Assembly (NCBI GenBank): GCA_964057225.1
Contig: OZ059894.1
Location: 8,804,001-8,868,000, forward strand
Direction of reading: 5' to 3'
Source: Auanema rhodensis
Taxonomy: Eukaryota > Animalia > Nematoda
Length of the DNA: 64,000 bases
Position 1 is the first letter of the stretch; every line of letters begins with the position of its first letter. A model generated the notes under the pieces. That model worked only from the letters and a program-made list of their open reading frames with translations. It was not told the origin of the DNA and did no database searches. This document shows, one piece after another, positions 12,066 to 21,800 of the stretch. The translations under genes were made by a program, and so were the position numbers.

Positions 12066-12656
12066 CCTGAAGAATCACAACCTAAGAAGACTTGTGTGTA
12101 CACGAGATAAAAGTTGTTTTTTGTAGTTTTTTTGAAAAAAAATTGAAGAAAATTCAACGATGAATGAATGAGAATCACAATAAGAATCAACAATAAAAGG
12201 AAGAAAATGAAGATTATTATGAAAATTTCTATATTAGGCATAAGGAGACATGAAGACAGATGGGAGGAATCACCACGAAAAACCGTAAACAGAGCGAATC
12301 GGATGATGATAAGTACGGAGATGATGGAGAAATGACAGTTGTAAAGACAGACTTTAGATGGTTACACGATCTATGCTCTTGCTTCTCGGCTTATAATCCA
12401 CTTCATAAGGCACTGATCATGTGAAAAGGCTTTAAGCTTCATAATCAAGCTCTAACTTCACTACTGAGTAAAGTGATTATAAACTGAAGAAAGACAAGAA
12501 ATAGAACATAGATCGGCAACTAAGGCATCATGTGAACCAGTGAGAAGTATATATATTGATTGATTGTTTGTTTGTTTATTTATTTGTTCGATTGTTTATC
12601 AATCAAATCAACAGCTGATCGAGTGTCTCAGCTTATTTGTCTATGTACAGATAGGC
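12066..12656 (-). repeat. 591 bp 3'UTR tract of pha-4 copy A, identical to 18143-18733
   Basis: Constant offset of 6077 at both ends, no differences seen by eye, and identical spurious ORF translations in the ORF track. Confidence 0.93.
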
Positions 12657-12672
12657 AGACCAGTATTCATGC

Positions 12673-14980
12673 TTATAAATTGGATGCCGTACTTGGATTT
12701 GTGGCACTGAAAATAAGATAAATAAGAAAATTCCAGAATTTCAAATAAAGGCATGAATAAAGTTGAAAAGAACTAAAAAAAAGTTTTACCTATATAACGT
12801 GTTGGAATAAGGTGTATAGTCAGCACCCATTGAGGTTGAATACGCACTAGGATACATTGATGAGTAATCAAAGCCAGCCTATAAAAATTGAATTACAAAC
12901 TTGAATGAAGAATCCCTTATTTTTTATTTTATTTTCACAGTTAGATATCCTGTATCCTCATCATGCTTCTGGCTATGTTTATCCACCTGGATATCCAGGA
13001 GCATCTGCCGTACACATGAACATACAGATATTGTTGAAAAAACTGCCAGTCACTTGTCAAAAGTATTCAACAAGGAACTAGTAGTTTGAGAGAATATTTG
13101 GGAAAAAAAGTAAAATTTTAAGGATGAGGATGATGATAATGATGATGATGATAGCTAACAAACCTTATTATCCATGATGGTGTTGATGCTGAATGCTGAT
13201 TGCGTCAAGCTAGGTAAGGCTGTTGAGTTGTTGAAGTCTTGGGAATACAGCATGCTGTTGTAATTGTAGGAGCCAAGCTGCAACAACAAAAATAATAAGT
13301 TCAAGTCCATAGGTTTTTGAACATTTAATTTCAATTTTTGATTTTTAATAGTATAGTTTATAGCATAGAGAAAGAAAAGAACTTCTGACTCTAAGTCCAG
13401 TCAATCAATTCTACTAGAACAGGCCTTGTTTGGTTTGCCGTTGTTCCTTTCGATGTCTACCGTACACACACGCACACACACACATACACATACAGCCATA
13501 CAGCCATACACACAAGTCAATTAGGTGTCAGGTATTACGCAATTTTATACGGTTTTAGATAGGTTATACAAACGTAAAAACGCGTTTTCTCTCAGTAATC
13601 ATCTGCACGTTGTGACTCCTTCTAACTCTCTTAGTACAGTATATTGCTTCTTAGCATTACTTACCGTTGGATCACTCATTCCAGCTGTTGAAATGACGGA
13701 ATTAGCTTGGGAAAGGGTGACTGAAGATTGGGAAATGGGCTGCATATGATCAGATCCTACGAGAGACACGTTTTCCTGAAGAAAAGTTGAATGATTAGAC
13801 ACATAAACTGATCGAATATATACCTGAAGTGCTAATGGGTTGTACTCGTCAGAAATTTTGTCTGATTCGAGTTTCATGGAATAAATTTTCTCAGATTTCT
13901 GACTTCCAATAGACGGTATACTAGTAACGCTTGGAGTGGTGCTAACTAAAGACTGATCGCTTAAGCTCTGCTCCGATGGAGCTCCTGAGTTGGAATCTGT
14001 TGAGGATTGGCCGGATGACTGATTGGCTGATTGCTGATTCTGTTGGTTCTGTCCAGATTGGTTTTTCTGAAAATACACATCATTCGTAACAATACTGATC
14101 CAATTTTCATGAGAATCTATTCGCATAAGAGGAAATTGAAATGAATAACGAACCTTTTTTCTGCTTGGCTCTCGTTCCCTAACCTTGAACCTCTTCTGAC
14201 GACGTAAGTGGCAGCCGTTTTCAAACATATTTCCGCATTGGGGATGTAAAGTCCAGAATGATCCTTTTCCTGGCTTATCAGGAGTTCTAGAAATGAAGTA
14301 AATGATGATATGTTCTTGAATAAAGAAAAGTTTTACCTTGGAACTTTGATGAAACAATCATTGAAGGACAATGAATGTCTGATAGAGTTCTGCCAGCGTT
14401 GTTGATTGGTCTCATAGTAAGGGAAACGCTTCATAATGAATTGATAGATTTCATTTAAAGTGAGCATCTTATTATCAGACATCTGGATAGCTCTAGTGAT
14501 GAGTGAGATGTAAGAATAGGGAGGCTTGCTCTTTCCATACCCTCCTTCGCGTTCAATTTTTTTCTGAAAAAAGGTGGAAATGAGAAATGACTTGTTACTT
14601 GTATTATCTTACAAATTCTTCATCGGTAAGATGAACTTCTTCCTGTGGGCCGAGATAGTCTCTGACCCCACGTGACACAGACACGGTTGGTACTGGCAAG
14701 GAGGAGGACCGTAAGGCTGCAAATCAATAGTTAAGCTTCATATATGATTGAAGGGAATGATAATGTTTGTAAAGAATAGAGAAAACTTACGATTATGTCC
14801 AGATGAAGATCCAATGTTATATCCAGTATATATAGAACTATTCATCTGAGCTGGTGTTGAGTTATACTGATATCCATATCCCAAAGGATTTAATGTATTA
14901 GTTGGATAGGTATAGCTTGGATATGTAACTCCATTTGTGGTATACGAAGGTAACACGGATAAGTAGTCTTGGGTAGACAT
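12673..14980 (-). CDS. pha-4: FoxA/PHA-4 forkhead transcription factor, divergent tandem paralog (copy A), ~414 aa, intact
   Basis: Exons 14980-14791, 14716-14613, 14563-14337, 14286-14154, 14066-13824, 13775-13665, 13277-13164, 12878-12790 and 12706-12673 splice in frame via GT-AG introns. Protein: MSTQDY...[15 protein letters not shown]...[17 protein letters not shown]...[38 protein letters not shown]...[15 protein letters not shown]. Confidence 0.93.
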
Positions 14981-18142: not shown

Positions 18143-18733
18143 CCTGAAGAATCACAACCTAAGAAGACTTGTGTGTACACGAGATAAAAGTTGTTTTTTG
18201 TAGTTTTTTTGAAAAAAAATTGAAGAAAATTCAACGATGAATGAATGAGAATCACAATAAGAATCAACAATAAAAGGAAGAAAATGAAGATTATTATGAA
18301 AATTTCTATATTAGGCATAAGGAGACATGAAGACAGATGGGAGGAATCACCACGAAAAACCGTAAACAGAGCGAATCGGATGATGATAAGTACGGAGATG
18401 ATGGAGAAATGACAGTTGTAAAGACAGACTTTAGATGGTTACACGATCTATGCTCTTGCTTCTCGGCTTATAATCCACTTCATAAGGCACTGATCATGTG
18501 AAAAGGCTTTAAGCTTCATAATCAAGCTCTAACTTCACTACTGAGTAAAGTGATTATAAACTGAAGAAAGACAAGAAATAGAACATAGATCGGCAACTAA
18601 GGCATCATGTGAACCAGTGAGAAGTATATATATTGATTGATTGTTTGTTTGTTTATTTATTTGTTCGATTGTTTATCAATCAAATCAACAGCTGATCGAG
18701 TGTCTCAGCTTATTTGTCTATGTACAGATAGGC
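18143..18733 (-). repeat. 591 bp 3'UTR tract of pha-4 copy B, identical to 12066-12656
   Basis: Direct repeat, as described for 12066-12656. Confidence 0.93.
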
Positions 18734-18807: not shown

Positions 18808-21800
18808 TCACAGGTTTGAAGCCGTACTTGGATTGCTGGCACTGAAACAAATCAAATAAATTTGAATTAAATAAGAAAGTTCATGAATAATATTTGTTTT
18901 AATATTGTAAAATCATAAGTTATAAGTATGTAAAAGCTAATTTACTGATATTCTTATATAAAATTTAAAAATCATTTTCGAATACTAACCTATATAATGT
19001 ATTTGGATAAGTCGTATAATCTCCTACAGCCGATTGATACATATTCGGATAAACACCAGGATAATCAAAATTCTGAAAACAAAAAAATGAAATGAGTTAA
19101 GTTGGTGGAAATAAGCTTAAGCTTATGCTTATAAGTATGCTCTTAAAAATTACCTTAGCATCAACAAGTGTGTTAATGGAAAAAGCTGACTGTGCCAATC
19201 CAGGTAATGTATTGGCTGCCGAAAAATCTTGTGTATACAGCATATTGTTGTATTGATAAGGATTAAGCTGAAACATTGATATATAAGTAAGTTGTTGATG
19301 CTGATGCTTAAAATAGGTTAGAAACTTAAAAACTTACCGGTGTATTGCTTATACCCACTGATGATATGACTGAGGTGGCCTGAGATAAGGAGGTGGTTGG
19401 AGATGAAAGTGATATAGGTTGAAGCTGTTGATTCTGCCCATCGTCTTTCTGAAAAATTTTGAAATATATCTATTCTAGGCTGCGAAAATACTAACCGTTC
19501 GACTCTGTTGAGTTGGCTGGCCTGTTGGTGTCGTTGATTGTTGTTGCTGTACATGAACTTGAGAATCGAGATCACCCTGACTACCAGGCACTTCTTCAAT
19601 CTTTGGTTCAAGCTTCACTTTTCCATATTCATCATCATTTGCACCATTCTCAATATTGAGCTGTTGCGTTTGTGACTGAATTTGGCTATTCTTCTGAAAA
19701 TAGAGAATGAATGAGAAAACTAGGAGACGTTGAATAGAGGTGAAGAGATTCAGATGAAGTGCTACTTTGAGATTTTTTTGTATAGATGATGCAAAACGAT
19801 ACGACAAATTTAAAAGAGGTTGTTGTAATGACCATTCCGACTGGCACTACTCTGACAAACGTTTTGAGGGCATGATGCTACGTTAAAAATTCTGAGACTT
19901 GCTGGCCTCTTGTAACCAAGACATATGTAGATATTATAGGGGGTAAAGGAAAAGTTGTTCAAACAATGACCAACCTTCTTTCTGCTTGGCTCTCGTTCCC
20001 TAACCTTGAACCTCTTCTGACGACGTAAGTAGCAGCCATTCTCAAACATATTTCCACACTTAGGATGTAAAGTCCAGAATGATCCTTTTCCTGGCTTATC
20101 AGGAGTTCTAGAAATGAGGTAAATGAGCTTAGTTCAAGTGAATGTCAGGCTTTTACCTTGGAACTTTCAAGAAGCAATCGTTGAAGGACAATGAATGTCT
20201 GATAGAATTCTGCCAGCGTTGTTGATTGGTCTCATAGTAAGGGAATAGATTCATAATCCAAGTATAAATTTCAGATAGAGTCAATTGCTTATTTTCAGAA
20301 TGTTGAATAGCCATAGTTATCAAGCTGATATACGAATAAGGAGGCTTTTGGTTACCGTAGCCATGACGTCGGAACTTGTTCTAAAAGAAAATCACATTAA
20401 TACTTGTTCTTCTTCGATTTGAAAGTCGTCATGAAATAGATTAATCGAATGGTTGTTTCATATTAAATGGAATGAATAACGATACCAATGAATTACTATC
20501 ATAATAAGTTTTTAACACATACAACCATCAGATTTAGTAAAAGAAAGACTTACATATTCAGCTGTAGTCAAGTGAACTTCTCCATTCTGTGATGGATATG
20601 AGTTACTTCGTGAGGACGATGGTGAAGCTGTTAATGTAGCTGATGCGCTATTAGGAGTGCCATTAGAATTTGCTGTTGATCGTGGAGCTGAATTTACAAC
20701 TATAAGAAAAAACAAACAAAAATCAATAAAAACGAAGTAACAAACATTAAAAAAAACAGTTTTTATTAGGTAAATAACTTACTTATTGGTGAGATGCCAG
20801 TAGTTTGCATGTTAAAGCCACCATATGAGCTATTCATCTGAGCTGGTGTTGAGTTATACTGATATCCATATCCCAAAGGATTTAATGTATTAGTTGGATA
20901 GGTATAGCTTGGATATGTAACTCCATTTGTGGTATACGAAGGTAATATTGATGAGTAGTCCTGTGTTGACATTCCCTGAAACGAACATCAGTACTTTGCA
21001 AACGAAATGTTTGGAAATGTTTGATTAAGGAATGAAGCAATAAAAAGACAAAATTTTCACACAAATTCATTTGCAATTTGAGAAATAAAAAGTTTTTTAA
21101 TGGACTTGTTGAAGAAAATTTAGATTATAAAGCATAAAAAAATGTTTTTTTTTCATGTTGTTATTGTCGATTCAAAGATTCAACAAATCAACGAAAAAAT
21201 AAATAGAAAAATGGATGTTGAAGCCCATCATAGGACATTGGCAATATCTAACTAAAAAGAAATATTTAAAAGAAATAAATAGAAAATGAAACGTTAATAG
21301 TCAGAATACTTATTGATTCTTTTTGATACTTTTAACTTCATTCAACACTCATATAAGCTGCTGATTTTGGATATTCGATTGTGGTTCACTACTGCTCAAG
21401 TGGTTGGCAGAATTACAATCTATCGAATGAGGAAAGAGGAACGAGATGGAAGAGAGACGAGGCGGGTCCCGGTGCCGAGTCCTCTCGGTCCCACCCTCAG
21501 CCCCCCCCTCTCTCTCTCCCCCTAGCCTCGGCGGCAGGCTCCACCCCCTACCGTAACCGGGCGAGTATGGCTGGCTGGCCTTGAGACGTGTGAGAGACGT
21601 TAGCTTGGGTGTAATAGAGTTATGAAAAATGTTTTTTTTTAAATTTAAATTTGGATTAAGAATAAGAGAATAATAGAGAAATATGTAAAGAAGAAATGAA
21701 ATGGATATGGAGAAGATGATGAGATCTGCCGGGGTGGTCTCGAATAAGGCGTCGATCGAAATGCGTTTCAGGAAGGCTAACGATGCAAATATTTGACCAA

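Follow-up and report, generated by a model that had tools for sequence, protein, structure and literature searches.

Caenorhabditis elegans has one copy of PHA-4/FoxA, an essential pioneer factor that sets organ identity in the gut and pharynx. The affinity of PHA-4 sites helps to set the time at which target genes are switched on (PMC523228). In forkhead proteins, bases are read by helix 3 through its NxxRH motif, and affinity and specificity are tuned by the wings together with the helix 2-3 region (PMC8501956). Here, we describe a tandem pair of FoxA/PHA-4 genes, copy A and copy B, in a stretch of 64,000 nucleotides (nt) from the nematode Auanema rhodensis (contig OZ059894.1, positions 8,804,001 to 8,868,000; hereafter, “the window”). 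Copy A is an unreported, lineage-specific variant of this well-known transcription factor, and we found no described pha-4 duplication of Auanema in the literature. We lean towards the view that copy A is a functional, selectively maintained FoxA/PHA-4 paralog that reads the same core motif and is altered in wing 2 and on a surface that makes no base contacts. The part of this view that rests on direct data comprises the sequence, the rarity of its residues, their conservation in a sister species, purifying selection, a gene-conversion mosaic and the fold of the ortholog.

The window has a G+C content of 33.8%, and its introns are short, nematode-like and of the TTTCAG type. The gene model for copy A was built from reading of the sequence, exon translations, and tblastn searches with two proteins of the sister species Auanema sp. 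JU1783: P0005, the counterpart of copy A, and P0156, the counterpart of copy B. The model has the following parts:

12676..14980, minus strand: coding region of copy A, nine exons and ~413 codons, with no stops in the exon translations
14980-14792, 14714-14613, 14563-14339, 14285-14154 and 14066-13824, minus strand: in-frame parts 1 to 5
13775-13665, 13277-13164, 12875-12792 and 12708-12676, minus strand: in-frame parts 6 to 9
14563-14337, minus strand: forkhead exon 3, encoding the N-terminal basic stretch, helix 1, strand 1, helix 2, helix 3 and strand 2
14336-14287, minus strand: intron of 50 nt, with GT at 14336-14335 and AG at 14288-14287, which splits an Arg codon after KVP
14286-14154, minus strand: forkhead exon 4, encoding wing 1, strand 3, wing 2 and the basic tail

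None of the nine exons is disrupted, every splice site read is GT..AG, and the start ATG lies directly 3ʹ of a TTTCAG acceptor. In a six-frame translation, exons 3 and 4 jointly make a complete, split forkhead domain, and the position of the splitting intron is common to copy A, copy B and both sister-species genes. A first-pass annotation, made by a model from the letters alone, had quoted a copy A peptide at 14208-14563; it matches our translation of 14563-14154 on the minus strand exactly, and the end coordinate given there, 14208, closes the His codon of wing 2 (14210-14208). Outside the forkhead domain, exons 1, 7, 8 and 9 encode motifs found in PHA-4 orthologs (QDY..PSYT, SAFSIN and NTLYS.TNP..A.NL). 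The intron between exons 6 and 7 includes a (GT/CA)n-like microsatellite at ~13430-13520, which shows as CVCVCV-type open reading frames.

Copy A belongs to the FoxA class. For database comparisons, window copy A was searched exon by exon with counts summed over exons, and P0005 served as the full-length proxy. Exon 3 alone matches Pfam Forkhead (PF00250) with an E value of 1.5e-29 and 102.4 bits, for a cut-off of 27 (copy B, 3.6e-30). Over the full domain, P0005 scores 127.9 bits (profile positions 1-88); copy B and C. elegans PHA-4 reach 129.8 and 129.2, respectively. By sequence, the best relatives of exon 3 among Protein Data Bank (PDB) entries are FOXA2, FOXA1 and FOXA3, ahead of FOXC2, FOXG1 and FOXL2. 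The FoxA wing-2 motif MFENGC(Y)LRRQKRFK is present with a single exception, the replacement of Y by H. Typical FoxB/FoxC proteins have a helix 3 of the KQGWQNSIRHNLSLN type and a wing 2 of the ENGSFLRRRRRF type. Copy A has neither, and FOXC2 scores below FOXA2; we reject assignment to the FoxB/FoxC class.

How unusual is the forkhead domain of copy A? We numbered the domain from the K of KPPYSY, which is FOXA1 residue 170 in the PDB alignment, such that position n is FOXA1 residue 169+n. The numbering is consistent because the wing-2 cysteine falls at the C258 of the literature, and hence the next residue, Y259, is position 90. Rarity was assessed in a sample of ~194-213 other FoxA-type domains. 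This sample was collected by similarity to copy A and is biased towards copy-A-like residues; rarity is, if anything, understated. The positions of interest are as follows:

14492..14494, minus strand: codon AGA, position 12 in helix 1 (FOXA1 M181); R in copy A, K in JU1783 copy A, M in copy B
14438..14440, minus strand: codon TTC, position 30 (FOXA1 W199); F in copy A, W in copy B
14426..14431, minus strand: codons AAG CGT, positions 33-34 at the end of helix 2 (FOXA1 D202-L203); Lys-Arg in copy A, Asn-Leu in copy B
14408..14413, minus strand (copy B, 20228-20233): codons GAG ACC, positions 39-40 in the helix 2-3 turn; Glu-Thr in both copies
14208..14210, minus strand: codon CAC, position 90 in wing 2 (FOXA1 Y259, adjoining C258); His in copy A, Y in copy B

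Position 12 is M in 191-210 of the other FoxA-type domains, and is never K or R. Position 33 is D in 164-179 and E in 19, and is never K; position 34 is L in 163-178, with R in 3. At position 90, Y occurs in 176-190 domains and F in 14-16, and His never occurs. These counts bear out the first-pass claim that M>R, NL>KR and Y>H are replacements at conserved FoxA positions, R34 being rare (three domains) rather than absent. The same claim fails for W>F: F is the majority FoxA state at position 30 (124-139 domains, with W in 65-71), and is unusual only relative to the close rhabditid relatives, in which W is usual. The A-specific residues K/R12, M16, N25, Q29, F30, K33, R34 and H90 are the same in both Auanema species, the His90 codon of JU1783 being CAT.

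One further change is shared by the two copies and was overlooked by the first-pass annotation. Position 39 is R in 173-191 of the other FoxA-type domains, Q in 15 and K in 6-7, and is never E. All four Auanema genes have E39 (YYETNQQ), a lineage-wide charge reversal in the helix 2-3 turn. Given this shared R39>E, copy B is not a standard FoxA reference either. The finding raises the possibility that K33, R34 and R/K12 compensate, by restoring charge or by forming a salt bridge to the shared Glu39, in which case copy A would be the normal FoxA and copy B the altered one. All four Auanema genes have E39 and every other FoxA-type domain of the sample is without it, which fits this idea, as does the net charge of the whole domain: +8/+9 for copy A, similar to the +7/+8 of ordinary PHA-4, and a lower +6/+7 for copy B. 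Moreover, E39 occurs in five non-FoxA forkhead domains of the sample, and each of the five has R34. Compensation leaves H90 and M12>R unexplained, however, and it is copy B that keeps the ordinary PHA-4 residues at positions 12, 34 and 90, a short branch and a long-isoform exon (see below). We regard compensation as decidedly unlikely.

The second gene of the pair and its surroundings have these features:

20380-20157 and 20107-19975, minus strand: forkhead exons of copy B, on the same strand as copy A and 5.8 kb upstream
24654-24577, minus strand: extra upstream exon of copy B, beginning MNQNSS, equivalent to the first exon of the 433-residue JU1783 model P0156
16785-16896 and 21755-21864: non-coding block, upstream of copy A and in the first intron of copy B, respectively; 94.6% identical

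Translation of 20380-19975 gives the copy B peptide as it had been quoted from the first pass. For copy A, no counterpart of the upstream exon was found by tblastn with the sister-species proteins, and copy A appears to encode the short form only, starting MSTQDY. The non-coding block is also present in the sister species (L001 2962-3097), where it is 85-89% conserved; it is a candidate shared regulatory element.

A second species has the same pair. When exon 3 was the query of an exhaustive profile-free search, the top match was P0005, a 355-residue product of Auanema sp. JU1783, at 97% identity, and all other matches were ordinary FoxA proteins at no more than ~84%. The JU1783 contig (L001) has the same tandem order, with the 433-residue forkhead gene P0156 upstream and P0005 downstream, and BLAST shows window copy B to be collinear with P0156 and window copy A with P0005. 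We consider window copy A to be orthologous to P0005 because of this synteny and the 95-97% identity. In a word-index search with P0005, the next relative was P0156 at 57%, followed by generic nematode PHA-4 proteins; the copy-A type is therefore known from Auanema alone. A maximum-likelihood tree of 37 FoxA proteins has P0005 and P0156 as sisters (100/99) inside rhabditid PHA-4, which places the sister-species copy A within the nematode PHA-4 clade, grouped with copy B. The branch of copy A is longer than that of copy B (0.70 and 0.26, respectively, for the JU1783 genes). As sequence passes between the paralogs, the sister grouping of A and B sets no more than a lower bound on the age of the duplication. 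An assembly or haplotype artefact is ruled out: the copies differ at 33% of nt in helices 1-2, and the same pair is found in the second species.

The exchange of sequence between the paralogs is strikingly uneven along the forkhead domain. We compared the copies segment by segment, using the proportion of synonymous differences (pS) and the nonsynonymous divergence (dN):

14426..14527, minus strand: helix 1 to helix 2 (KPPYSY to IMKR), spared; 34 of 102 nt differ between A and B, with pS 0.67 and dN 0.30
14339..14425, minus strand: homogenised stretch from FPYY via helix 3 to strand 2; 5 of 87 nt distinguish it from copy B
14210..14241, minus strand: wing-2 island, spared, ending at the first base of the His codon; A and B differ at 7 of 32 nt, with nearly identical flanks

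Within exon 4, A and B are identical over the first 44 nt, differ at 7 of the following 32 nt and differ at 1 of the final 56 nt. Over the stretch from helix 3 to wing 2, pS is 0.21 between the window paralogs, as against 0.73 (A) and 0.44 (B) between orthologs. Site patterns in the four sequences, scored as grouping the orthologs or grouping the genes of one species, follow the same division:

Helices 1-2: 12 ortholog-grouping and 2 species-grouping sites
FPYY to the end of exon 3: 1 ortholog-grouping and 7 species-grouping sites
Wing 1 and strand 3: 0 ortholog-grouping and 3 species-grouping sites
32-nt stretch ending at the His codon: 3 ortholog-grouping sites and 1 species-grouping site

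The ratio of ortholog-grouping to species-grouping sites is 15:3 in the spared segments and 1:10 in the homogenised segments (Fisher p = 0.00026). In the window species, gene conversion between the paralogs is homogenising helix 3, wing 1 and the terminal part of wing 2, and is sparing helices 1-2 and the His stretch. In the last part of exon 4, window copy A is the same as both B genes, and JU1783 copy A stands apart; this suggests that conversion in the window lineage ran from B to A. The recognition helix, described as unchanged in the first-pass annotation, is indeed identical in A and B, but this identity is partly the product of recent gene conversion and not of constraint alone. The persistence of A-specific residues as islands in a homogenised region is expected if selection opposes overwriting them.

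A separate tract of identity lies outside the genes. A 591-bp block at 12066-12656 and 18143-18733, just 3ʹ of the stops of copy A and copy B, is 100% identical between the two sites, which are its only occurrences in the window. It is either a very recent conversion tract or collapsed assembly. In JU1783, runs of N follow both gene ends (L001 6150-9905 and 12176-12704), as if identical repeats broke the assembly.

The islands bear on what we regard as the main rival explanation, that the two genes are subfunctionalised in expression only. Under this explanation, copy A is functional, and its forkhead substitutions are biochemically inert, having been tolerated and then frozen. F30, R34 and a basic residue at position 33 all occur in other Fox classes and are thus structurally tolerated. 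Copy A is without the upstream long-isoform exon of copy B (24654-24577) and has its own upstream region, and the rate asymmetry inside the forkhead domain is weak. Against this, the A-specific residues sit in conversion-resistant islands, which is expected only if their replacement by B residues is selected against. Furthermore, K/R12, K33 and H90 are never seen in ~200 FoxA-type domains, and the other nematode pha-4 duplicates keep M12 and Y/F90. We consider an expression-only difference unlikely, though it has to be taken seriously.

Copy A has been under constraint since the split of the two species, which are the only two covered by our selection comparisons: the window species and JU1783. 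Over the forkhead codons of copy A, dN is 0.034, and pS is 0.76 (saturated); the orthologous proteins are 97% identical in exon 3 and 95% in exon 4. Over all nine exons, the ratio of nonsynonymous to synonymous proportions (pN/pS) is 0.115 in copy A, lower than the 0.159 of copy B. Decay of copy A is excluded because its constraint since the species split at least equals that of copy B. A pseudogene, likewise, is ruled out by the nine intact exons, the forkhead protein identity across species and the low pN/pS. One might still propose that copy A is a redundant duplicate drifting to loss, with its odd residues as early damage, on the grounds that its branch is longer (0.70 versus 0.26) and that it has otherwise unseen residues at conserved sites. 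The data contradict this. The exons are intact with canonical splice sites, the forkhead protein identity of 95-97% has been kept despite saturated synonymous sites, pN/pS is below that of copy B, the Pfam score equals that of C. elegans PHA-4, and the predicted fold is confident. Hence, we regard drift to loss as extremely improbable.

Structure prediction had been proposed in the first pass as a check. An AlphaFold model of the sister-species domain (P0005:49-164, from a 40-sequence alignment) is a winged helix with its elements in the order H1-S1-H2-H3-S2-W1-S3-W2, a mean predicted local distance difference test score (pLDDT) of 81.8 and core values of 90-95. The top Foldseek matches are FoxA1, HNF-3gamma and FOXA2, with a probability of 1.00. 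The model superposes on nucleosome-bound FoxA1 (8vfy) and on HNF-3gamma with DNA (1vtn) with a root-mean-square deviation (rmsd) of 1.6-1.8 A over 100 columns. The ortholog domain is thus predicted to be a confident winged helix, not a domain that fails to fold, and the copy A domain of the window should fold as well, because the ortholog model superposes on both structures.

Where do the unusual residues lie relative to DNA? The DNA-contact residues listed in a review of FOX DNA-binding domains are all identical in A and B, and positions 12, 33 and 34 are outside them (PMC8501956). With these residues and helix 3 identical, copy A would be expected to bind the TRTTKRY / RYAAAYA motif and to have pioneer activity on nucleosomes. 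In other Fox classes, positions 12, 33 and 34 are Q, E, K, R or H, and all three are probably solvent-exposed. The local charge of the helix 1-2 region is +2 in both A orthologs, as against -1 or 0 in every other domain tested. A further A-specific change, H90, is at the equivalent of FOXA1 Y259, which lies within the wing-2 cancer hotspot and for which Y259C/S are tabulated as raising transcriptional activity; neighbouring wing-2 changes in FOXA1 affect binding and mobility on chromatin (PMC7815845). When FOXA1 C258, the adjacent residue, is covalently modified, the preference for three flanking bases is relaxed (bioRxiv 10.1101/2024.03.21.586158).

Together, these observations can be arranged into a mechanism. 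We propose that a tandem duplication in the Auanema lineage, before the split of the window species and JU1783, gave rise to copy A. Copy A would read the same core forkhead motif, as expected from the match of its helix 3, wing 1 and basic wing-2 tail to copy B. The fixed differences would act at two sites. The first is the solvent-facing surface of helices 1-2 (M12>R/K, D/N33>K and L34>R), where local net charge would have gone from -1 to +2; this could alter electrostatic contacts with nucleosomal DNA, or with partner proteins. The second is Y90>H in wing 2, the equivalent of FOXA1 Y259, which could alter the reading of flanks, residence time or affinity through wing 2 and flanking DNA. Copy A may then divide or extend the work of PHA-4 with copy B. 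The shared core motif and the altered biochemistry and expression of copy A are what we infer. Given that the sister species has kept its replacements, copy A is probably a working, specialised paralog, and the altered affinity, partners or nucleosome binding suggested by the first-pass annotation are a reasonable interpretation, backed by the evolutionary evidence.

A bolder version of the proposal concerns the nucleosome. Linker histone H5 has a secondary DNA-binding site on its helix 1-2 face, and ordinary FoxA is without such a site. Copy A might have acquired a second basic surface on this face which, with His90, would cause it to engage nucleosomes differently, for example with longer residence, or with compaction and not opening. 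We consider this quite unlikely. If true, the conversion-resistant islands would coincide exactly with the residues that distinguish two modes of pioneer-factor action within a single animal.

Several points weigh against our preferred reading, that copy A is a maintained paralog with altered surface and wing-2 properties. The structural model is of the sister-species domain, a proxy for copy A of the window, and its wing 2, where His90 lies, is modelled at low confidence (pLDDT 51-66). The exon 3 search returned no short transcript-derived protein fragments from Auanema, and the full-length protein search returned only the JU1783 gene models and no spliced copy-A fragments. Within the 97-residue domain, 4-8 changes are A-only and 0-4 are B-only, an asymmetry that is significant with some outgroups only. 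Since synonymous sites are saturated between A and B in helices 1-2 (pS 0.67-0.83), positive selection cannot be demonstrated for the stem branch. Some species-grouping sites could stem from codon preferences particular to each species, but this is insufficient as an explanation of the mosaic because ortholog-grouping sites are nearly absent (1) in the homogenised segments. Finally, the conserved differences between A and B could have begun as neutral changes that epistasis then held in place, with the genes differing mainly in expression.

What is the significance of a second PHA-4 of this kind? Auanema offers a natural pair in which the DNA-reading helix is held identical and a few residues, of the surface and of wing 2, stay distinct in the face of homogenisation. 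The A/B pair is a ready-made experiment on the parts of the forkhead domain, beyond base contacts, that tune function, and one of the changed positions is equivalent to FOXA1 Y259, within the wing-2 cancer hotspot. Auanema has three sexes, linked to dauer passage, and genome editing is possible.

The human FoxA proteins resemble copy A closely. The domain is 78-84% identical to those of FOXA1/2/3 (8vfy, 7yze, 5x07 and 1vtn), with an rmsd of 0.5-1.8 A for the sister-species model. The position of FOXA1 Y259 is His in copy A, and no natural FoxA in our sample has His there. The likeness to other Fox classes is local. A helix 2 end of the form YQFIMxRFP is typical of FoxB/FoxC/FoxG, and FoxG-like sequences can be basic at position 33; the non-FoxA domains of the sample often have R, H or K at position 34 and often have K at position 33. 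Unlike FoxB/FoxC/FoxG, copy A has helix 3, wing 1 and wing 2 of the FoxA type, and FOXC2 scores ~95 bits, versus ~113 for FOXA2.

Independent duplicates of pha-4/FoxA exist in other nematodes. There is a conserved pair in Strongyloides/Parastrongyloides, a pair of neighbours in Steinernema hermaphroditum (QR680_005775/005777), and second copies in Caenorhabditis sp. 36 and C. remanei (GCK72_021910). The duplicate proteins in our set are:

P0166/P0020
P0016/P0180
P0017/P0195
P0168/P0242
P0179/P0200

As in Auanema, some of these duplicates include one fast-evolving copy. In contrast to copy A, all of them keep M12 and Y/F90, R34 is found in one only, and K33 in none.

Among the closest described systems are also C. 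elegans PHA-4 and the FoxA orthologs of other nematodes, in which the recognition helix, wing 1 and the core of wing 2 are identical to those of copy A. The nematode PHA-4 orthologs also share with copy A the N-terminal QDY..PSYT, the C-terminal SAFSIN and the terminal NTLYS.TNP..A.NL. Copy A differs from them in being a lineage-specific second copy, with R/K for M12, K-R for D-L at positions 33-34 and H for Y90, and, like its paralog, with E-T for R-Q at positions 39-40.

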